Shown here piece by piece: positions 17,325 through 62,198 of a DNA stretch of 64,000 nucleotides. Position 1 is the first letter of the stretch. Every line of letters starts with the position of its first letter. The notes under the pieces were generated by a model that was not told the DNA's origin, did no database searches, and saw only the letters and a list, made by a program, of their open reading frames with translations. The stretch is from positions 1-64,000 of IMG/VR virus record IMGVR_UViG_3300044640_001495; one strand, 5' to 3'. Position numbers and translations under genes: made by a program.

Positions 17325-19658
17325 ATGGAAATAACAGTAATCAAAAGAAATGGTGATCGAGAGCCACTCACCATTGAGAAATGGCAGGCACAGGTGGCAA
17401 AAGTATGTAGCGGTATTGCAGATGTTAGCCAAAGCATGATCGAGATCAAAGCACAGCCACATTTTTATGACGGCATAACCACAAGAGAAGTAGATGAAAT
17501 CACTCTAAGAGCCATTGTGGATCTCATAGACGTTGAAAACAATCCCGACGTTGGTCATACCAATTATCAGTATGTAGCAGGCAAACAGCGAGTTAGCATG
17601 TTGCGTAAAGATGTTTACGGTAGCTACACTCCCCCTAGTCTATATGAAATAGTCAAGACAAATGTGGCCACCGGTCTGTACACGCCAGACCTACTTGTGT
17701 GGTACACAGAAGATGACTGGAACAAGATGAATGACATGTTGGATCATGAAAAGGATGAAACATATTCATATGCTGCCATTGAGCAATTGATAGAAAAGTA
17801 TCTAGTTAAAAATCGTAGTACAAAACAAACATACGAAACTCCACAAATTAGATATATGGTTGCAGCCGCTACTGTTTTTCATAAAGAAGAACCTAATGCA
17901 TCACGTATGCGTTATATCAAGGAATACTACAATGCAGCCTCCGATGGTCTATTTACTCTTGCTACTCCTGTCCTTGCTGGTCTCGGTACCCCTACTAAAC
18001 AATTCAGTTCGTGCGTACTTATTCGCAGTGATGATGACTTGGATAGTATTTTTGCTTCAGGTGAAATGATGGCCAAGTATGCCAGCAAACGTGCAGGCAT
18101 TGGTTTAGAAATTGGACGACTACGTCCATTAGGCAGTCCCATCCGTGGTGGTGAGATTATGCACACAGGTATGATACCCTTCTTGAAGAAGTGGTTTGGT
18201 GACCTGCGTAGTTGCAGTCAAGGAGGTATTCGTAATGCAAGTGCTACTGTTTTTTATCCTATTTGGCATCATCAGTTTGATGATCTTATTGTTCTTAAGA
18301 ACAACCAAGGAACAGAAGAAACCCGAGTCCGTCATATGGATTATGGGGTTGTGCTTAGTGCCTTCTTCTGGAGACGATTCAAAAACAAAGAAGACATAAC
18401 CTTCTTTGATCCCAACGAAGTACCTGACCTATACGAAGCGTTTTACAAAGACACTGAGTTGTTTGAAGAACTCTATGTCAAGTACGAAAAACAAAAAGGC
18501 CTCCGTAAGAAAACGATGAGTGCCGAAGAAGTGTTCAAGAGTGGTATACTAAAAGAGCGCACAGACACGGGTCGAATATATCTCGTATTCATTGATAATG
18601 TCATGAACCAAGGACCTTTTGATCCTGAGTACCATACGATTTATCAAAGTAACTTGTGCTGTGAGATCCTATTACCCACACGTTCATTTAAGCGATTAGA
18701 CGACGATAGTGGACGCATAGCGTTATGTACACTGGGATCTATCAACTGGGGATCGTTCCGCAATCCAGAGGATATGCGTAGAGCCTGTAGGATTCTACAG
18801 CGTAGCCTGTGTAACATTCTTGACTATCAAGATTTCTTGTCGATACAGAGTAAACTTAGTAACGACGAGATACAACCACTAGGTATTGGTGTTACAAATC
18901 TTGCCTACTGGCATGCCAAGCGTGGACTCAAGTATGGCGAGAAAGATGCACTACAGGATGTTAAAACCTGGATGGAGCACCAAGCGTTCTACTTAACAGA
19001 AGCCACAGTTGAATTAGCCAAAGAACGTGGCCCGTGTACAGAGAGTCATAAAACTAGATATGGACAAGGCGTCTTTCCCTGGGAACTTCGTGCCAAGGGT
19101 GTTAATGAACTGGCAGACTTCGCTCCTGAACTTGATTGGGAAACACTACGTGGTAATATGAAGCAGTACGGTGTGCGTAATGCCACATTGATGGCCATTG
19201 CCCCTGTTGAAAGTTCAAGTGTTGTTATTAACTCAACCAATGGCATTGAAATGCCCATGAGCCTAATATCAGTTAAAGAATCAAAGGCAGGATCATTTGT
19301 ACAGGTTGTTCCTGAATACCATAAACTAAAAAACAAATATCAAATGATGTGGGAACAGAAAGACTGTGATGGCTATTTGAAAACAGCCGCAGTTCTTGCT
19401 GCCTATGTTGATCAATCAATTTCAACTAACACATTCTACAATCCAGCACACTGGGCAGATCGTAAAGTGCCTACTACATTGATTGCTAAAAATTTGATGC
19501 AGGCGCACATGTGGGGATTGAAAACATTCTACTACAGCCTGATTAATAAGGCAGGTAGCAAAGCAATGGCCGAAGCAACTCCCGAAGTACACTACAACGG
19601 GTTCCATAACGAAAGAGAAGTAATCGAAGACGAAGACTGCGAGGCATGTAAATTATGA
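17325..19658 (+). CDS. nrdA: ribonucleoside-diphosphate reductase class Ia alpha subunit with ATP cone
   Basis: VIKRNG ATP cone, QFSSC, SNLCCEI, TFYYS and C-terminal CEACKL. Confidence 0.97.
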   Translation: MEITVIKRNGDREPLTIEKWQAQVAKVCSGIADVSQSMIEIKAQPHFYDGITTREVDEITLRAIVDLIDVENNPDVGHTNYQYVAGKQRVSMLRKDVYGSYTPPSLYEIVKTNVATGLYTPDLLVWYTEDDWNKMNDMLDHEKDETYSYAAIEQLIEKYLVKNRSTKQTYETPQIRYMVAAATVFHKEEPNASRMRYIKEYYNAASDGLFTLATPVLAGLGTPTKQFSSCVLIRSDDDLDSIFASGEMMAKYASKRAGIGLEIGRLRPLGSPIRGGEIMHTGMIPFLKKWFGDLRSCSQGGIRNASATVFYPIWHHQFDDLIVLKNNQGTEETRVRHMDYGVVLSAFFWRRFKNKEDITFFDPNEVPDLYEAFYKDTELFEELYVKYEKQKGLRKKTMSAEEVFKSGILKERTDTGRIYLVFIDNVMNQGPFDPEYHTIYQSNLCCEILLPTRSFKRLDDDSGRIALCTLGSINWGSFRNPEDMRRACRILQRSLCNILDYQDFLSIQSKLSNDEIQPLGIGVTNLAYWHAKRGLKYGEKDALQDVKTWMEHQAFYLTEATVELAKERGPCTESHKTRYGQGVFPWELRAKGVNELADFAPELDWETLRGNMKQYGVRNATLMAIAPVESSSVVINSTNGIEMPMSLISVKESKAGSFVQVVPEYHKLKNKYQMMWEQKDCDGYLKTAAVLAAYVDQSISTNTFYNPAHWADRKVPTTLIAKNLMQAHMWGLKTFYYSLINKAGSKAMAEATPEVHYNGFHNEREVIEDEDCEACKL

Positions 19659-24703: not shown

Positions 24704-24907
24704 ATGGTAACAGGAAAAGTAAAATGGTTTAACGACGCCAAAGGTTTTGGATTCATTACTCCGGACGATGGTGGCGCAGACTTATTTGCTCACTTTTCAC
24801 AGATTAATTCGAGTGGCTTCAAGAGCCTACAAGAAGGACAAAGTGTAAGGTTTGAAGTGACTCAGGGTCAAAAAGGCGAGCAGGCTAGTAATATTCAAGC
24901 TGCCTAA
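24704..24907 (+). CDS. cspA: cold-shock protein
   Basis: [17 protein letters not shown] (RNP1) and LFAHFS (RNP2). Confidence 0.95.
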
Positions 24908-24910
24908 AAA

Positions 24911-25270
24911 ATTGTTGTAGAAGTCTTAAAGTAAGGCATTCTGGACGCGGGTTCGACTCCCGCCAGGTCCACCATAAAGGAGATTAGTATGGATAACGAA
25001 TATAGTGCTCTAGTTGGCTTTATTGTTGTTATCGTAGTATTTGCTCTAGTCCTTTTATGATGGGCCTGCCATGGTTTCGACAGGGTGAGATAGGATAAAG
25101 ATCAACACGTGGGGTCACGTAAAATACAAAAAACGTAAATGCAAACGCAGATACATTCGACTTCAGCGCAATGAGCTTCACTGGAAACACTGTTTCCGGC
25201 AAAAGCAAAGTTGCTCTAGCTGCCTAAAAAACAGCGGTCCGAGGTAGTTATACCTTGTCATCCAAAATAG
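24911..25270 (+). ncRNA. ssrA: circularly permuted (two-piece) tmRNA
   Basis: Acceptor piece ...GGACGCGGGTTCGACTCCCGCCAGGTCCACCA ends at 24974. The coding piece starts GGGCCTG at 25062 and pairs with CAGGTCC, including G3-U70. Tag ORF 25141-25227 encodes ANADTFDFSAMSFTGNTVSGKSKVALAA*. Outer boundaries are approximate. Confidence 0.9.
24989..25060 (+). CDS. 23-aa hydrophobic peptide encoded in the tmRNA intervening segment
   Basis: AAGGAG RBS directly after CCA; MDNEYSALVGFIVVIVVFALVLL*; stop ends 1 nt before the tmRNA 5' end. Confidence 0.55.
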   Translation: MDNEYSALVGFIVVIVVFALVLL

Positions 25271-25271
25271 C

Positions 25272-25298
25272 AGAACCCGCTTCGGCGGGTTTCTTTTT
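25272..25298 (+). terminator. intrinsic terminator after tmRNA
   Basis: agaacccgc-TTCG-gcgggtttcttttt. Confidence 0.88.
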
Positions 25299-25328
25299 GG
25301 CAATATTTCCAAATTATCGTCTCGAAGT

Positions 25329-34555: not shown

Positions 34556-36457
34556 ATGTCTAAGATCATCGGTATCGATTTAGGTACCACAAACTCATGT
34601 GTAGCTGTTATTGAAAACGGCATCCCCAAAGTAATTGAAAATGCAGAAGGTGCTAGAACAACACCTTCAATCGTTGCCTACGGCAAAGATGAAATTCTCG
34701 TAGGTGCTTCAGCAAAACGTCAATCAGTTACTAACCCCAAAAATACAATCTATGCTTCAAAGCGTTTGATTGGACGCAAGTTTAAAGAGGAAGCTGTTCA
34801 AAAGGACATCAACCTTATGCCCTACGAAATCATGGAAGCCAAGAATGGCGATGCATGGGTTCGTGCTAATGGTCAAGAGTTGGCGCCTCCACAAATCTCA
34901 GCAGAAGTTTTGCGTAAGATGAAAAAGACAGCGGAGGATTATCTAGGTCATGAAGTTACTCAAGCAGTTATCACAGTTCCTGCGTACTTTAACGACAGCC
35001 AAAGACAAGCTACTAAAGACGCTGGACAAATCGCAGGCCTGGAGGTACTCCGTATTATTAACGAGCCTACTGCGGCAGCTCTTGCTTATGGCGTTGATAA
35101 AGCTGATAAAAGAGATAGGAAAATTGCTGTTTACGATCTTGGTGGCGGTACATTCGATGTTTCGATCATCGAAATAGCCAACGTAGATGGAGACAAGCAG
35201 ATCGAAGTATTGAGCACAAACGGCGATACATTCCTTGGCGGTGAAGACTTTGACCAACGTATTATGGATTACTTGGTTGAAGAATTCCGCAAGGATCAAG
35301 GTGTTGATCTAACCAAAGATGTACTTGCTCTACAGCGTTTAAAAGAATCTGCTGAGAAGGCAAAAATTGAATTGTCTAGCTCTGCAAGCACAAGTGTTAA
35401 TTTGCCATACATCACAGCAGACGCAAGTGGCCCTAAGCACATGAATATCACTATTAGCCGTAGCAAGTTAGAACAGCTTGTTGACGAGTTAATCACTCGC
35501 TCAATTGAGCCATGTAAAGTTGCCATGAAAGATGCAGGTGTCACAGCCGCTGACATCGATGAAGTTATTCTTGTTGGTGGTATGACACGTATGCCAAAGG
35601 TACAAGAAGCCGTTGAAAAATTATTTGGCAAGGCACCACGTAAGGATGTTAATCCAGACGAAGCTGTTGCCGCAGGTGCCGCAGTACAAGGTGCTGTTCT
35701 CGGTGGCGATCGTACTGATGTGTTGTTGCTAGATGTGACTCCACTGAGTTTGGGTATTGAAACAATGGGCGGTGTGTTTGCAAAGGTTATTCAAAAGAAC
35801 ACAACCATTCCGACTAAGGGACAGCAGACATTCTCAACAGCAGAAGACAATCAACCTGCGGTGACTATCAAGGTATTCCAAGGTGAGCGTGATCTAGTAC
35901 AATACAACAAATTGCTAGGTGAATTCAATCTTGAAGGTATTCAACCGCAACGTCGTGGACAGCCGCAAATCGAAGTTACATTTGATATTGATGCTAACGG
36001 TATCATGAATATCTCGGCCAAGGACAAGAGCACAGGCAAAGAAAACAAGATCACTATTAAATCAGATAGCGGTCTAAGCAAAGAAGAAATTGAACGCATG
36101 GTACGTGAAGCTGAAGAAAATGCAGAGAGTGATCAAAAAGCTCGAACATTAATTGATGCTCGCAACCAAGCTGAAGCAACTGTACATGAAGTTAAAAAAG
36201 ATCTTGAAGAATTTAAAGATGAATTAACTGATACAGAAAAGACAGAAATCGAGACAGCAGTTAAATCAGTCGAAGACGCTATGAAAGAAGATGACGCTGA
36301 TAAAATTAAAGCTGAACTCGAAAAAGTTTTTCCGGCAATGAAAACATTGTTGGAGAAAAAGCAGGCCAAGGAACAGGCAGCTCAGGCGCCTCAACCAGAA
36401 GCCAAAGCAGATGACAATGTGGTAGACGCTACGTTTACAGAAACTAAGTCTAGCTAA
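34556..36457 (+). CDS. dnaK: Hsp70 chaperone DnaK
   Basis: [26 protein letters not shown] and VTFDIDANG motifs. Confidence 0.98.
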
Positions 36458-58124: not shown

Positions 58125-58213
58125 GGACGAGTGCGCTGAATTGGTTGAAGGCAACGGACTGTAAATCCGCCACATAAGAAACATTGTAGGTTCGACTCCT
58201 ACCTCGTCCACCA
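58125..58213 (+). tRNA. tRNA-Tyr(GTA)
   Basis: Acceptor ggacgag/ctcgtcc, loop CT-GTA-AA, long variable arm, CCA. Confidence 0.9.
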
Positions 58214-58222
58214 AACGAATGG

Positions 58223-58251
58223 TTGACTTTTTTTTGGATTGGTGTTATACT
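58223..58251 (+). promoter_or_regulatory. sigma70-type promoter
   Basis: TTGACT-N17-TATACT. Confidence 0.75.
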
Positions 58252-58281
58252 ATTAATACTGTGAACTTAAAAGGAAATCAA

Positions 58282-58476
58282 ATGCAATCGTATCGTGTTT
58301 ATGTTGAAGTGGGTTCGTATGCAGGTGAAGGTACCAGCGGTGCTTTTCAAACTGAGAGCCTTCGACAATTTGAAACTGTAGTAAATGCCCAGACATCCGG
58401 AGATGCTGTGCGTATAGCAGAAGCCCAATATGGTGGCCAAGAACGGTGCCGTGTCACGTTCCGCGGCGTTGCTTAA
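58282..58476 (+). CDS. small hypothetical protein within the tRNA array
   Basis: AAGGA RBS; own promoter; 64 aa. Confidence 0.6.
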   Translation: MQSYRVYVEVGSYAGEGTSGAFQTESLRQFETVVNAQTSGDAVRIAEAQYGGQERCRVTFRGVA

Positions 58477-58484
58477 CAATTTTA

Positions 58485-58559
58485 GGTCTGTTCGTATAGA
58501 GGTTATTACTGCGGATTGTCTATCCGCTTACGGGGGTTCGATTCCCCCACAGACCGCCA
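58485..58559 (+). tRNA. tRNA-Asp(GTC)
   Basis: gcgga-TT GTC TA-tccgc; T-loop TTCGATT; CCA. Confidence 0.92.
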
Positions 58560-58566
58560 AGTTTAT

Positions 58567-58643
58567 TCCTCGGTAGCACAGTTGGTAGTTGCGCGGCACT
58601 GTTAATGCCGATGTCGGAAGTTCGAGCCTTCCCCGGGGAGCCA
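58567..58643 (+). tRNA. tRNA-Asn(GTT)
   Basis: cggca-CT GTT AA-tgccg; CCA. Confidence 0.92.
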
Positions 58644-58648
58644 ATAAT

Positions 58649-58724
58649 GTATCCTTAGCTCAATTGGCAGAGCGCTGGTCTCCAAAACCAGAGGTTCGCG
58701 GTTCGAGGCCGTGAGGGTACGCCA
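58649..58724 (+). tRNA. tRNA-Trp(CCA)
   Basis: ctggt-CT CCA AA-accag; CCA. Confidence 0.92.
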
Positions 58725-58732
58725 AGTTTTAT

Positions 58733-58807
58733 GGACCGTTCGTCTATCGGTTAGGACACTAGGTTTTCATCCTGGTAAGAGGGGTTCGACTCCCCTACGG
58801 TCTTCCA
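58733..58807 (+). tRNA. tRNA-Glu(TTC)
   Basis: ctagg-TT TTC AT-cctgg; CCA. Confidence 0.92.
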
Positions 58808-58814
58808 AATTTAT

Positions 58815-58892
58815 GTGGCGGTGGCAGAGAGGCCCATTGCAACGGATTGCAAATCCGTAAAATCGTGAGTTCAAATCTCACCCGCCACTCCA
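58815..58892 (+). tRNA. tRNA-Cys(GCA)
   Basis: acgga-TT GCA AA-tccgt; U73; CCA. Confidence 0.9.
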
Positions 58893-58942
58893 AACATGGC
58901 TCCACTCGTTCGACATAGTCGATGCTGTGGAGTTTTTCTTTT

Positions 58943-59023
58943 GCCCCGGTAGACAAATTGGCAAAGTCGTCTCTCTCAAAAAGAGAAATTTAAATGCGGG
59001 TTCAACTCCCGCCCGGGGTACCA
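58943..59023 (+). tRNA. tRNA-Leu(CAA)
   Basis: tctct-CT CAA AA-agaga; small variable arm; CCA. Confidence 0.88.
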
Positions 59024-59028
59024 ATCAT

Positions 59029-59118
59029 GGAAGTATGGCTGAGCATGGCTTAAGGCAGCAGTCTTGAAAACTGAAGGCTCGAAAGGGTCCGTGGGTTCGA
59101 ATCCTACTACTTCCGCCA
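59029..59118 (+). tRNA. tRNA-Ser(TGA)
   Basis: cagt-CT TGA AA-actg; long variable arm; G73; CCA. Confidence 0.9.
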
Positions 59119-59240
59119 ACTATGGACGAATCATTTGAGCAGTGTTAGATGCACACGGGTTACCTTTCCTAACCGCCAAGTGGCGTACCCCTGCCGAATG
59201 ACCTGGGCGTGGCAGTGATAATGATTCGTCCGCCTAATAC

Positions 59241-59315
59241 AGCCTATTAGCTCAGTGGTAGAGCACCGTCTTGATAAGGCGGGGGTCCTTGGATCGTTCC
59301 CAAGATAGGCTACCA
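59241..59315 (+). tRNA. tRNA-Ile(GAT) with non-canonical T-loop ATCGTTC
   Basis: ccgtc-TT GAT AA-ggcgg; acceptor agcctat/ataggct; CCA. Confidence 0.88.
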
Positions 59316-59337
59316 ATTTTTTAAAAGGAGATCTGTC

Positions 59338-59382
59338 ATGACTAGTGACAAGAGTGATAAGATAACGGGGGTGAAACTTTAA
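59338..59382 (+). CDS. 14-aa mini-ORF overlapping the 5' end of tRNA-Lys
   Basis: AAGGAG RBS; MTSDKSDKITGVKL*. Confidence 0.35.
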   Translation: MTSDKSDKITGVKL

Positions 59383-59440
59383 GGTGAAGTAACTGGCTTT
59401 TAACCAGTAAAACTCGGATCGTTCCCGAGCACCCCTACCA
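59367..59440 (+). tRNA. tRNA-Lys(TTT) with non-canonical T-loop ATCGTTC
   Basis: actgg-CT TTT AA-ccagt; CCA. Confidence 0.85.
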
Positions 59441-59521
59441 TATAAAAACACATTAGGCCTGGTCATAGACCATCGCGGGTATAGTGCCTTCCGTGCCGCG
59501 GACTTGAGTGTGTTTTTATAT

Positions 59522-59597
59522 GGTAATATAGCATAGTGGCTAATGCAGTTGCTTCATACGCAGCCTATCGTTGGTTCGAGTCCAACTATTACCACCA
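59522..59597 (+). tRNA. tRNA with CAT anticodon (elongator Met or lysidine-Ile2)
   Basis: gttgc-TT CAT AC-gcagc; paired G1-C72, so not initiator-like; CCA. Confidence 0.88.
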
Positions 59598-59603
59598 AGT
59601 TGT

Positions 59604-59677
59604 TGGGGGTTAGTTAAATGGTATAACCGCGGATTTTGATTCCGCTATTAAAGGTTCGATTCCTTTACCCTCTGCCA
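59604..59677 (+). tRNA. tRNA-Gln(TTG)
   Basis: gcgga-TT TTG AT-tccgc; U1-U72 mismatch; CCA. Confidence 0.88.
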
Positions 59678-59685
59678 AAAAATAA

Positions 59686-59760
59686 CGGTCCTTAGTTCAA
59701 TGGATAGAATGCTTGGCTTCGAACCAAGCGGTGTGGGTTCGATTCCTGCAGGACCGGCCA
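59686..59760 (+). tRNA. tRNA-Arg(TCG)
   Basis: cttgg-CT TCG AA-ccaag; CCA. Confidence 0.9.
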
Positions 59761-59761
59761 A

Positions 59762-60436
59762 CTAGATAATAGTAGATAGTTCAGCAGGAGTTAACTTAGG
59801 TGGCTCTGGAAAAGGACGTGGATCAGAAAACCCAACTGTTGTTGGTCCGTTGTTTACCGTTTCTCTTACTCGAGAGTCATTGGGTTGGCCAACAGATAGA
59901 AACACAATGGGCCATTCATTTTCTGCAAGACCTAAAATCTTGTGAGCTTGGTCTTCGAAAAAGCATGATGTAAAGGCAGTACGATATCCTAGAGATTCTG
60001 CTTGTATCATAGAAAAACTAGCAGCAATCATTGTATCTTTTTCAGAACGTGTTCGAACAGTATATTGTGTTTTAGGATCAGCAGATCTAGAAGATACATT
60101 TATTCCTTGTTCACGTACTGTAGTACCATTAGAAACAAGACCTAGGTCAAAGTTGTCTAAGATAGGAACTCCTATCCATGCTAACAGTAAAGGTGATTGG
60201 GCTGTTAGTAAATGTTTACGAATTGGCATGTTAATGAAACTGTCTAAGAACAGTTTATTTTTTAATTCAAGAGCTTTGTGGCTTTGAGTTAATGCAATAA
60301 CACGCCAAGGATATGCACGTTGCTTACTAGGGGCTGAACAACCAGCTGTTAGTATTGAGTCAATATGCTCTTGAGGTATAGCGTCATTAGTAAATGCTCG
60401 CTGTGTTCGTCGATTTAAAAAGATGTCTAACATCAA
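59762..60436 (-). CDS. nitroreductase-family flavoprotein inserted antisense in the tRNA array
   Basis: NRRTQRAF, I..IL.AG..APS...AYPW, MIQAESLGYRTAF and FLSVG. Confidence 0.8.
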   Translation of the reverse strand: MMLDIFLNRRTQRAFTNDAIPQEHIDSILTAGCSAPSKQRAYPWRVIALTQSHKALELKNKLFLDSFINMPIRKHLLTAQSPLLLAWIGVPILDNFDLGLVSNGTTVREQGINVSSRSADPKTQYTVRTRSEKDTMIAASFSMIQAESLGYRTAFTSCFFEDQAHKILGLAENEWPIVFLSVGQPNDSRVRETVNNGPTTVGFSDPRPFPEPPKLTPAELSTII

Positions 60437-60447
60437 GTATTTATTTT

Positions 60448-60521
60448 ATCGCTGTAGTGAAAAGATATCACAAGACCCTGCGAAGGTCTAAGTCCACGTT
60501 CAACTCGTGGCAGCGATACCA
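60448..60521 (+). tRNA. tRNA-Arg(GCG)
   Basis: agacc-CT GCG AA-ggtct; acceptor atcgctg/cagcgat; D-loop lacks GG; CCA. Confidence 0.82.
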
Positions 60522-60591
60522 AAATTAGTAAAATTCTATTACGTAAGATCCAAGCAAAGTGCAAGGATTGGCCATAACAAGGAGATATAAA

Positions 60592-60798
60592 ATGAAACCT
60601 ATTACTTTTAAAAATCGTTTAAACAACGAACGAGTAGTCTGTGAAGATTCTCGTCAAACTCAGAATATAGATGGCGTTGAGTATCTCTTGGTTCATCGCC
60701 CTGACAATCAACGACAGTTCCTTATGCGTAAGGATGTGTTAGAAAAAGTTAATGGTGTTGGTAGTGTAGTGGCTGCACGGCTGTCTGTGAAACAGTAA
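60592..60798 (+). CDS. small hypothetical protein whose C-terminus is read through tRNA-His
   Basis: AAGGAG RBS; MKPITFKNRLNNERVVCED...; stop lies inside the tRNA. Confidence 0.6.
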   Translation: MKPITFKNRLNNERVVCEDSRQTQNIDGVEYLLVHRPDNQRQFLMRKDVLEKVNGVGSVVAARLSVKQ

Positions 60799-60827
60799 GA
60801 GAGAGTTCGATTCTCCCCTTCACCCCA
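60754..60827 (+). tRNA. tRNA-His(GTG), atypical (two U-U pairs in acceptor stem)
   Basis: gctgt-CT GTG AA-acagt; G-1/C73; CCA. Confidence 0.72.
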
Positions 60828-60829
60828 AT

Positions 60830-60905
60830 GCCGCTTTAGCTGATGTGGTCATAGCACCGGTTTGAAGAACCGAGGAACTAGGTTCGATCCCTAGAGGCGG
60901 CACCA
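60830..60905 (+). tRNA. tRNA-Phe(GAA)
   Basis: cggt-TT GAA GA-accg; CCA. Confidence 0.88.
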
Positions 60906-60911
60906 AGATAT

Positions 60912-60995
60912 GTGAGCGTGGTGGAATGGTATACACAGCAGACTTAAAATCTGCCGCCTTCGGGATTGAGGGTTCAAGTCCCTCCGCTCATACCA
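60912..60995 (+). tRNA. tRNA-Leu(TAA)
   Basis: gcaga-CT TAA AA-tctgc; variable arm; CCA. Confidence 0.92.
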
Positions 60996-61002
60996 AATAA
61001 AT

Positions 61003-61094
61003 GCCAGCGAGACTTGGTAGTCAGAGAGGTTTTATAAACCTTTTAGCGCCAGATTAGCGTTCTTGAGAGGGTTCGATTCCCTCCGCTGGTACCA
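61003..61094 (+). tRNA. tRNA-Ile(TAT) with long variable arm
   Basis: gaggt-TT TAT AA-acctt; variable arm agcgc-cagatta-gcgtt; acceptor gccagcg/cgctggt; A73; CCA. Confidence 0.8.
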
Positions 61095-61124
61095 AATTAT
61101 TTTATAAGTTTTTTCATAAAGTTG

Positions 61125-61153
61125 TTGACACACAGGTGATTAGACTATATAAT
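61125..61153 (+). promoter_or_regulatory. sigma70-type promoter inside the tRNA array
   Basis: TTGACA-N17-TATAAT. Confidence 0.85.
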
Positions 61154-61175
61154 GTATATTATTAGTTAGAAATTT

Positions 61176-61259
61176 GCGCAAGTGGTGGAATGGTATACAC
61201 GCTGGTCTTAGAAGCCAGTGCCGAAAGGATTGAGAGTTCGAGTCTCTCCTTGCGCACCA
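61176..61259 (+). tRNA. tRNA-Leu(TAG)
   Basis: ctggt-CT TAG AA-gccag; variable arm; CCA. Confidence 0.92.
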
Positions 61260-61266
61260 TAGTTTA

Positions 61267-61342
61267 GGGTTCTTAGCTCAGTTGGTAGAGCGTCTGCCTT
61301 ACACGCAGAATGTCGTCAGTTCGACCCTGGCAGAACCCACCA
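61267..61342 (+). tRNA. tRNA-Val(TAC)
   Basis: tctgc-CT TAC AC-gcaga; CCA. Confidence 0.93.
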
Positions 61343-61350
61343 AGCAACAC

Positions 61351-61438
61351 GGAGCATTGGCCGACCGGTTAAGGCAACAGATTGCTAATCTGTCATTCAG
61401 TAATGGGTGAGTAGGTTCGATTCCTACATGCTCCGCCA
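61351..61438 (+). tRNA. tRNA-Ser(GCT)
   Basis: acaga-TT GCT AA-tctgt; long variable arm; CCA. Confidence 0.92.
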
Positions 61439-61441
61439 TAA

Positions 61442-61641
61442 CGTTCCGAGTGTCTTCGGATAGTGTGACCCACACGATGAGAAGTAGTGTGACAACTACG
61501 GGTGGTAGTCTTTAAACCCAAAGGCCGCTAGCAATGCGAGAACGGTCCCTGTCGGGAAGCGGGTGGAAGGTACGAGTGAGGGGTATGATAGCGTCATATC
61601 TTTCTGTACTATAATTACCGCCGGGGGATGCAGAGCAACCA
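61442..61641 (+). ncRNA. candidate ~200-nt structured RNA of unknown family in the tRNA array
   Basis: At least seven short stems, GC-richer than flanks, no ORF of 60 aa or more, ends in ACCA. Confidence 0.55.
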
Positions 61642-61662
61642 GATTTTAATAAAGGAAATACA

Positions 61663-61875
61663 ATGAAACCAGGTCCAAATTATAGAATGAGTGCTTTGAC
61701 TAAAGCAAGTCTAGCAATGAGTAGAGTTCTAGATCCGCACAAACGAGGTGAATGGAAACGTGCTATGATTGATGCTGAACTATGTGCTGCCGTGGTGCCA
61801 AAACGTGAACCACGCAAACAGGGAGGTGGTAATTTTACCACTCATGCATCCGGAACAGTATCCAGTGGAGGCTAA
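61663..61875 (+). CDS. small basic hypothetical protein
   Basis: AAGGA RBS; 70 aa. Confidence 0.6.
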   Translation: MKPGPNYRMSALTKASLAMSRVLDPHKRGEWKRAMIDAELCAAVVPKREPRKQGGGNFTTHASGTVSSGG

Positions 61876-61876
61876 C

Positions 61877-62026
61877 ATGCAAGTTCGAGTTAAAGAAAAT
61901 GCAGATCAGGTTGGTAAGTGTGGTTGCGGTCGTTCGCCTACTGGTAAGTGCATCGGTTGGCACGGACTAACCGAACAAGCATTTAAAGAAAAACTTCAAG
62001 AGTATAAACTCAACGAAGGTAAGTAA
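61877..62026 (+). CDS. CDGSH-like Fe-S / zinc-finger small protein
   Basis: GGAGG RBS; CGCGRSPTGKCIGWHG. Confidence 0.65.
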   Translation: MQVRVKENADQVGKCGCGRSPTGKCIGWHGLTEQAFKEKLQEYKLNEGK

Positions 62027-62032
62027 AATATT

Positions 62033-62107
62033 GGGCTGTTGGTATAGATGGGAACACAGTAGCTTTGCAAGCTTCAATCCCCGGTTCGATCCCGGGACGG
62101 TCCACCA
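62033..62107 (+). tRNA. tRNA-Ala(TGC)
   Basis: G3-U70 in gggctgt/acggtcc; TT TGC AA loop; CCA. Confidence 0.88.
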
Positions 62108-62124
62108 AGTTTTAAGTAAGTATT

Positions 62125-62198
62125 GCCCCTTTAGTATAATGGTATTACACCTGTTTTGTAATCAGGTTACGGCAGTTCGATTCTGTCAAGGGGCACCA
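62125..62198 (+). tRNA. tRNA-Thr(TGT)
   Basis: cctg(t)-TT TGT AA-(t)cagg; CCA. Confidence 0.9.

Follow-up and report, generated by a model that had tools for sequence, protein, structure and literature searches.

A tRNA gene with anticodon UAU in a 353-kb lake phage carries an extra hairpin resembling the anticodon arm of the ordinary isoleucine tRNA

The 92-nt gene at 61003-61094 (+) of IMGVR_UViG_3300044640_001495 was found to be a real tRNA gene with anticodon UAU, A73 and an encoded CCA, which is predicted to read the isoleucine codon AUA and which carries, between its anticodon arm and its T arm, an additional hairpin with G-A-U, the anticodon of the major tRNA-Ile, at the centre of its loop. 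It belongs to a widespread family of about 100 distinct relatives, found by two pattern scans, a covariance model and BLAST, for which our literature searches returned no description, although absence from the library searched does not prove novelty. The window analysed here is the first 64 kb (positions 1 to 64,000) of this 353,123 bp virus record, a freshwater jumbo phage that is estimated to be 98% complete. ARAGORN revealed 32 tRNA genes and a permuted tmRNA in the genome, with most of the tRNA genes in a cluster at 58.1-66.3 kb. The tmRNA gene (window 24882-25318, +), called by both ARAGORN and Rfam, is in two pieces and has a 28-residue tag ending in ALAA. Near-identical DNA was present in lake-water metagenomes from at least 14 studies. 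A megablast search of the tRNA cluster against phages returned only scattered matches to ordinary tRNAs.

The first-pass annotation, made from the sequence alone, had described a 92-nt tRNA-Ile(UAU) with A73, a long variable arm and a 3-bp D stem, and this observation was confirmed, with one amendment to the D stem. ARAGORN called tRNA-Ile(tat) at exactly these coordinates, and the minimum-free-energy fold gave the same five-helix shape (−35 kcal/mol, z = −4.2, 0 of 200 shuffles as good). ARAGORN drew a 3-bp D stem, whereas the fold and the covariation across 65 relatives support 4 bp. The features of the locus, in window coordinates, are as follows:
61003-61094 (+), the whole tRNA(UAU) gene, 92 nt with encoded CCA; an identical copy in locus L115 (L numbers denote the individual loci compared in this study) scored 107.9 bits against the family covariance model, R1
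61003-61009 (+), 5′ strand of the 7-bp acceptor stem (G1-G7), pairing with 61084-61090 and opening with a G1-U72 wobble
61011-61022 (+), compact D arm with a 4-bp stem (GACU/AGUC) and a UGGU tetraloop, preceded by a single linker nucleotide, A8 (61010)
61024-61044 (+), decoding arm with a 6-7 bp stem and the loop UUUAUAA (61031-61037), anticodon UAU at 61033-61035, followed by A37 and A38
61045-61061 (+), extra arm shaped like an anticodon arm, with a 5-bp stem (A-U, G-U, C-G, G-C, C-G) and the 7-nt loop CAGAUUA (61050-61056), GAU at 61052-61054
61062-61066 (+), 5-nt linker CUUGA between the extra arm and the T stem, the length of a class I variable loop
61067-61083 (+), T arm with a 5-bp stem and the loop UUCGAUU, giving a 7/5 acceptor branch
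61084-61094 (+), 3′ strand of the acceptor stem (61084-61090), discriminator A73 (61091) and CCA (61092-61094)
59241-59315 (+), an ordinary phage tRNA-Ile(GAU) in the same cluster (A1-U72, A73), called by ARAGORN and Rfam
58125-62198 (+), the part of the tRNA cluster that lies in the window (23 tRNA genes); the cluster runs on to 66330 in the genome

The gene has the hallmarks of a bacterial tRNA: a 7-bp acceptor stem, a 5-bp T stem, a T loop of the form UUCRANU, a 7-nt anticodon loop of the form Y-U-UAU-A-A with U33 and a purine at position 37, a discriminator and CCA. However, the Rfam tRNA model (RF00005) did not list it at its gathering score (29 bits), and in a permissive search the best hit within the tRNA clan was a sub-threshold hit to tRNA-Sec (35.7 bits against a threshold of 47). 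Unlike tRNA-Sec, which has a 13-bp (8/5) acceptor branch, a UCA anticodon and a 6-bp D stem, this tRNA has a 7/5 branch, a UAU anticodon and a 4-bp D stem.

To determine whether the gene has relatives, viral contigs were scanned with a pattern that fixed only the anticodon loop and the T loop and required a long gap between them. This returned 119 stretches, of which 27 held long (88-95 nt) tRNA(UAU) genes (28 counting the window's own copy), giving 18 distinct sequences with unrelated acceptor stems. The identical 92-nt sequence was found in contigs whose tRNA order differs. In an alignment of 17 of the 18, the only invariant columns outside the imposed pattern were one D-loop G, A73, and the G-A-U in the loop of the extra arm. 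Class I-shaped tRNA(UAU) genes without the arm (73-79 nt) also occurred among the phage contigs returned. A second scan fixed CAGATTA and the T loop but left the anticodon free, and returned at least 120 stretches. Of 100 hits that overlapped a tRNA call, 96 were long tRNA(UAU), and seven of 10 uncalled hits were also family members, with loops CUUAUAA or CUUAUAG. Pooling of both scans gave 99 unique sequences, with A73 in 97, G1-U72 in 64 and an encoded CCA in 70, which form at least 16 groups at below 70% identity. As both scans fixed the T-loop sequence and the second fixed CAGATTA, these family statistics are biased.

A covariance model aligned 65 distinct members, and on this alignment 97.4% of cells were paired, against 66.5% in shuffles and about 42% in slid controls. 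Compensatory changes were found in 27 of 28 pairs, supporting all five helices. The alignment was fitted to the model, which favours the structure, but the slid controls and the number of different pair types still make the result robust. All seven acceptor pairs covary (99.6% paired), with G-U at 1:72 in 51 of 65 relatives; the four D-stem pairs show compensatory changes (96.5% paired); the pairs of the extra stem are 94-100% formed, each with compensatory changes; and the T stem is 100% paired with four of five pairs covarying, including the outermost. UAU was present in 64 of the 65 aligned relatives when the scan did not fix the anticodon, A37 in 63 and A38 in 50.

The extra arm was compared with the variable arms of Leu, Ser and Tyr tRNAs from the same loci. 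Its stem has 4-5 bp across the family, and its loop was 7 nt in 77 of 96 family members, whereas the control loops were mostly 4 nt, and the linker to the T stem was 5-6 nt in 65 of 96, compared to mostly 1-3 nt in the controls. The triplet GAT was in the hairpin loop in 96 of 96 family members but in only 1 of 91 Leu, 1 of 100 Ser and 0 of 39 Tyr tRNAs (2 of 230 in total). The window's tRNA, with a 7-nt loop and a 5-nt linker, therefore does not have the class II arrangement of a 3-5 nt loop lying 1-3 nt from the T stem. The family loop reads [C/U][A/C/G]-G-A-U-[U/G/A][A/G], an anticodon-loop layout with GAU at positions 34-36 but with no U33 and rarely a purine at position 37, so the arm should not decode on the ribosome itself. 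The first-pass annotation did not comment on this GAU, which we take to be the key feature. When the extra arm was deleted in silico, ARAGORN called an ordinary class I tRNA-Ile(UAU) in 57 of 65 sequences, whereas deletion of the UAU arm left a tRNA-Ile(GAU) call in only 15 of 65, which indicates that the GAU arm is a poor decoding arm, as the lack of U33 suggests. The architecture would fit a tandem duplication of an anticodon arm, but this is conjecture as the two arms share no sequence today, and a comparison with the neighbouring tRNA-Ile(GAU) as a possible sequence origin showed no clear similarity. The 5′ linker of the extra arm is 0-2 nt in the window's subgroup and 3-5 nt in the acidobacterial members. 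Other tRNAs of normally class I isotypes (Trp, Cys, Pro, Glu, Gly and Met) in phage tRNA clusters (L151, L167, L179, L209, L050 and L078) were 84-91 nt long and carried short extra arms with tetraloops; extra arms on tRNAs other than Leu, Ser and Tyr therefore seem to be common in phage clusters, but without an anticodon-like loop.

BLAST analysis revealed family members in four cultured phages. The copy in Sinorhizobium phage Phosso is annotated as tRNA-Ile(tat), whereas those in Synechococcus phages S-SRM01 and S-SKS1 and Lactobacillus phage LpeD have no annotation, for which the failure of the Rfam tRNA model may be part of the reason. In Phosso, S-SRM01 and LpeD an HNH endonuclease gene (L246:3314-3856, L247:3136-3555, L276:1751-2371) lies roughly 50-230 nt downstream of the family tRNA, which hints at spread by homing endonucleases. 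A stringent pattern scan of one genome per prokaryotic species gave 26 hits. About 20 of these are in Pyrinomonadaceae/Blastocatellia (Acidobacteria), inside dense tRNA arrays of up to 27 tRNA calls per 8-kb locus (L249-L272), two of them on complete chromosomes. In many of these arrays the family tRNA lies close downstream of a tRNA-Ile(GAU), and several Leu calls in the arrays are only 76-78 nt long. The remaining hits are on contigs assigned to Alphaproteobacteria, Polynucleobacter, Melainabacteria and Pseudobdellovibrionaceae, some of which may be mis-binned phage DNA. All five cellular genomes with a family member that were tested encode TilS, so in cells this tRNA is an accessory.

AUA usage in the phage, which the first-pass annotation had proposed as a check, was then examined. 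In 370 ORFs AUA occurs 1864 times, which is 27% of Ile codons or 17.9 per 1000 codons. The phage encodes a full-length DnaK, NrdA and a ClpA-type ATPase (window 34556-36457 and 17325-19658; genome 129851-132184). DnaK is about 65% identical to DnaK coded in Pseudomonas, Salmonella and Acinetobacter records and, being of cellular type, was uninformative as a marker for relatives; it has only one AUA codon, against 20 in ClpA. Word searches with ClpA and NrdA returned only close homologues (81-100% identity), which were used for substitution spectra. The 33 AUA columns of the two proteins hold Ile in 89% of these homologues, and among the non-Ile residues Val was the most common (0.49), as it was at AUU/AUC columns (0.62). 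In an alignment to E. coli ClpA from the PDB, the 19 aligned AUA sites are I 7, V 4, L 4 and other 4, with the Ile sites including the invariant Ile of Walker A (GKTAIAEG), RLIGAPPGYVG and PDKAID, and that of FRNRLDxxI. AUA therefore keeps its standard meaning, and no alternative genetic code is proposed.

Profile searches of the phage genome found no IleRS or other class Ia synthetase (PF00133), no TilS-type PP-loop gene (PF01171) and no psbA (PF00124), a cyanophage marker. The genome does encode a second small tRNA cluster outside the window, at 327481-327765 (−) (L134:3481-3765), which holds Leu(UAA), Arg(UCU) and, at 327,688-327,765 (−), a CAU tRNA whose best E. coli match is ileX, the lysidine tRNA-Ile2. 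BLAST of the phage tRNA-Ile(GAU) and of one CAU tRNA against E. coli gave no match. The phage probably carries both a lysidine-dependent and a UAU-type AUA decoder, and the UAU tRNA is an addition to the lysidine route, not a replacement.

Four lake and freshwater metatranscriptome runs, all in the form of contigs, were compared with the cluster. They cover the tRNA genes but have no or almost no depth (at most 1.5) over the ORF stretch 59872-60447. One run contains a 96-nt contig that covers 61001-61095 with 4 differences, which matches the size of the gene and suggests, without proving ends or strand, a discrete RNA from a close relative. Contigs in two runs join the end of the tRNA(UAU) directly to tRNA-Val (junction 61095/61272), skipping tRNA-Leu(UAG) and the promoter-like spacer, so relatives differ in cluster content. 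This spacer contains a perfect sigma-70 consensus promoter (61125-61153, +; TTGACA, 17 nt, TATAAT; 12 of 12), 31 nt after the tRNA(UAU) and before tRNA-Leu(UAG), which suggests an internal promoter within the cluster. Contig depth was also very high in four lake metatranscriptomes (up to about 4600) at 61456-61640. The region 61445-61640 had no Rfam match (E ≤ 1) and no significant fold, and there was no tRNA call; it may be an unrecognised small RNA, or the depth may reflect cross-mapping from other organisms.

The E. coli-type IleRS identity set comprises G34 or lysidine-34, A35, U36, t6A37, A38 and A73 (PMC9976931). The UAU arm and acceptor end of the window's tRNA supply A35, U36, A37, A38 and A73, the t6A modification being inferred only, but the decoding arm has U34, and G-A-U is present only in the extra arm. 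E. coli IleRS charges a UAU anticodon at 1.1% of the efficiency for the lysidine anticodon, a 360-fold discrimination (PMC3575796). C29-G41, a listed minor Ile determinant in E. coli (PMC9976931), and C4-G69 were also examined. The decoding arm has G29-C41, while the extra arm has C-G at the equivalent pair in 59 of 65 relatives, a pairing that we counted in favour of the reading below; position 4:69 is A-U in the window and C-G in 22 of 65.

The interpretation offered by the first-pass annotation, of either TilS-independent AUA decoding or charging by LeuRS or SerRS that would recode AUA, was partly supported, in that the tRNA could decode AUA without lysidine in an AUA-rich phage but the evidence does not support recoding. 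Our best reading is that the UAU arm reads AUA on the ribosome without needing lysidine from TilS, while the GAU arm, with A73, supplies the identity signal (G34-A35-U36) that host IleRS requires and a UAU anticodon lacks, which would let the phage add AUA-decoding capacity in hosts that range from cyanobacteria to Firmicutes. The analysis itself establishes the gene, its fold, the family, the coupling of UAU with a GAU-bearing loop and that AUA keeps the Ile meaning; expression as a tRNA-sized RNA is suggested but not proven, whereas decoding by the UAU arm, charging by IleRS and the role of the GAU arm as its handle are inferred from sequence alone. We are highly confident that this is a real, selected tRNA family and consider it likely to be an Ile-accepting AUA decoder, but the GAU arm as the IleRS identity element, and with it the explanation as a whole, is held only tentatively. 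In its favour, the triplet is exactly the major Ile anticodon and is invariant in phages of hosts from four phyla, which points to a universally conserved reader, and anticodon-arm mimics that bind synthetases exist elsewhere. Against it, class I synthetases such as IleRS approach tRNA from the D-arm side with the variable region facing solvent, so the arm may not reach the anticodon-binding domain unless the two arms swap stacking or lie side by side. Additionally, the mimic lacks A37 (no t6A), a strong determinant for E. coli IleRS, and linker lengths differ between subgroups. L. plantarum, which has its own tRNA-Ile(UAU) and is among the lactic acid bacteria whose IleRS recognition of that anticodon has reportedly been studied (references listed in PMC9976931), is nevertheless host to phage LpeD, which keeps the arm.

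The closest alternative, which we consider less likely, is that IleRS reads this AUA decoder in the usual way, through A35, U36, t6A37, A38 and A73, and that the extra arm does something else; it could stabilise a tRNA with a tiny D arm, recruit a U34-modifying enzyme, limit misreading of AUG or protect against a host nuclease. This agrees with the retention of A37, A38 and A73, with the expected approach of a class I synthetase, with the class I-shaped phage tRNA(UAU) genes that lack the arm and with the short extra arms of other phage tRNAs. However, it does not explain why exactly G-A-U is invariant at the loop centre across at least 16 divergent groups and four host phyla, nor why that loop is coupled to UAU only, and it leaves the 360-fold poorer activity of E. 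coli-type IleRS on UAU; subgroups with a normal D arm also keep the extra arm, so it is not a fix for the small D arm. It is unlikely that the RNA is a non-translational decoy or regulator that binds IleRS or another reader of the tRNA-Ile(GAU) anticodon loop, or an element tied to mobile DNA, as suggested for allo-tRNA(UAU). Mukai et al. found six allo-tRNA(UAU) variants to be inactive in an E. coli reporter and proposed non-translational roles (PMC5389517), and the HNH genes and the accessory arrays of TilS-encoding Acidobacteria would be compatible with this, but the well-formed decoding loop (U33, UAU, A37), the 7/5 branch expected by EF-Tu, A73, the encoded CCA, the heavy use of AUA by the phage and the position among ordinary tRNA genes in the metagenomic loci, the Acidobacteria arrays and phage LpeD argue against it.

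Charging by LeuRS, TyrRS or SerRS, with partial recoding of AUA, is very unlikely. A73 suits bacterial Leu and Tyr identity, LeuRS does not read the anticodon, and the nematode V-arm tRNA-Ile(UAU) is leucylated in vitro (PMC3333845). However, the AUA codons align with conserved Ile/Val positions, the arm geometry differs from that of Leu/Ser/Tyr arms, the G73 of bacterial tRNA-Ser is absent and 1864 AUA codons would be mistranslated. A pseudogene or chance cloverleaf, for which only the sub-threshold Rfam score speaks, is refuted by the covariation, in addition to the fold, the compensatory changes among about 100 distinct relatives and the identical copies in differing tRNA contexts.

The nearest described class is the allo-tRNA(UAU) of Acidobacteria, Clostridia and Proteobacteria (Mukai et al. 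2017, PMC5389517). Allo-tRNAs are, like the present family, bacterial or phage tRNA-like genes, and have a long extra arm, a longer anticodon stem and a Sec-like D arm with a tetraloop, features shared by the window's subgroup although other subgroups have a normal D arm; UAU is among their commonest anticodons, Acidobacteria are a main home, and they were found through tRNA-Sec scoring, the model that also scores the window's tRNA best. They are defined by an 8/4 or 9/3 acceptor branch and mostly have a Ser-like G73 or U73, whereas this family is 7/5, with position 8 unpaired and the outermost T-stem pair (columns 108-124) being G-C in 35, C-G in 14 and U-A in 13, and has A73. No mention of a GAU loop was seen in what we consulted of that study, and overlap with its 'irregular tRNAs' cannot be excluded. 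The class I tRNA-Ile(UAU) of Mycoplasma mobile, Lactobacillus plantarum and B. subtilis tilS suppressors (PMC3575796, PMC3919564) share the UAU anticodon, A37, A73 and AUA decoding without lysidine, but have the ordinary four-arm shape. In M. mobile the solution lies in the enzyme, as IleRS Arg865 accepts U34, whereas here the proposed solution lies in the tRNA, which would let it work with unadapted IleRS in many hosts. Nematode nev-tRNA-Ile(UAU) (PMC3333845, PMC4300185) also has a V arm and a UAU anticodon, but is eukaryotic, derived from class II tRNAs and leucylated in vitro, while here the arm is not of class II type and AUA keeps the Ile meaning. Class II tRNAs (Leu, Ser, bacterial Tyr) share a fifth helix between the anticodon and T arms but differ in loop length, linker and GAT content as described above. 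The thrS mRNA operator and viral tRNA-like structures such as the BMV TLS (PMC11791061) contain hairpins that imitate an anticodon stem-loop to be bound by the cognate synthetase, but they sit in mRNAs or viral genomes, and to our knowledge a mimic placed inside a decoding tRNA that also has a different real anticodon has not been reported.

How bacteria separate AUA (Ile) from AUG (Met) is a classic problem, for which the known answers are lysidine, agmatidine, ava2C or an IleRS adapted to UAU. As most copies of this family go unannotated or are missed by the Rfam tRNA model, phage AUA-decoding capacity is underestimated, and the four cultured phage-host pairs make the idea directly testable. 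It is possible, though no more than that on present evidence, that this tRNA separates its identity from its decoding, with IleRS reading the GAU hairpin and the ribosome reading UAU. This would be a further solution to the AUA problem, sitting in the tRNA and independent of the host enzyme, a portable way round the lysidine/TilS system spread by phages across bacterial phyla and possibly created by tandem duplication of an anticodon arm. It would also be the first case known to us in which a natural decoding tRNA carries the anticodon read by its synthetase in a separate arm from the anticodon read by the ribosome, which bears on tRNA identity rules and on the origin of extra arms, and suggests a design for orthogonal tRNAs in which a codon is reassigned without touching the synthetase.
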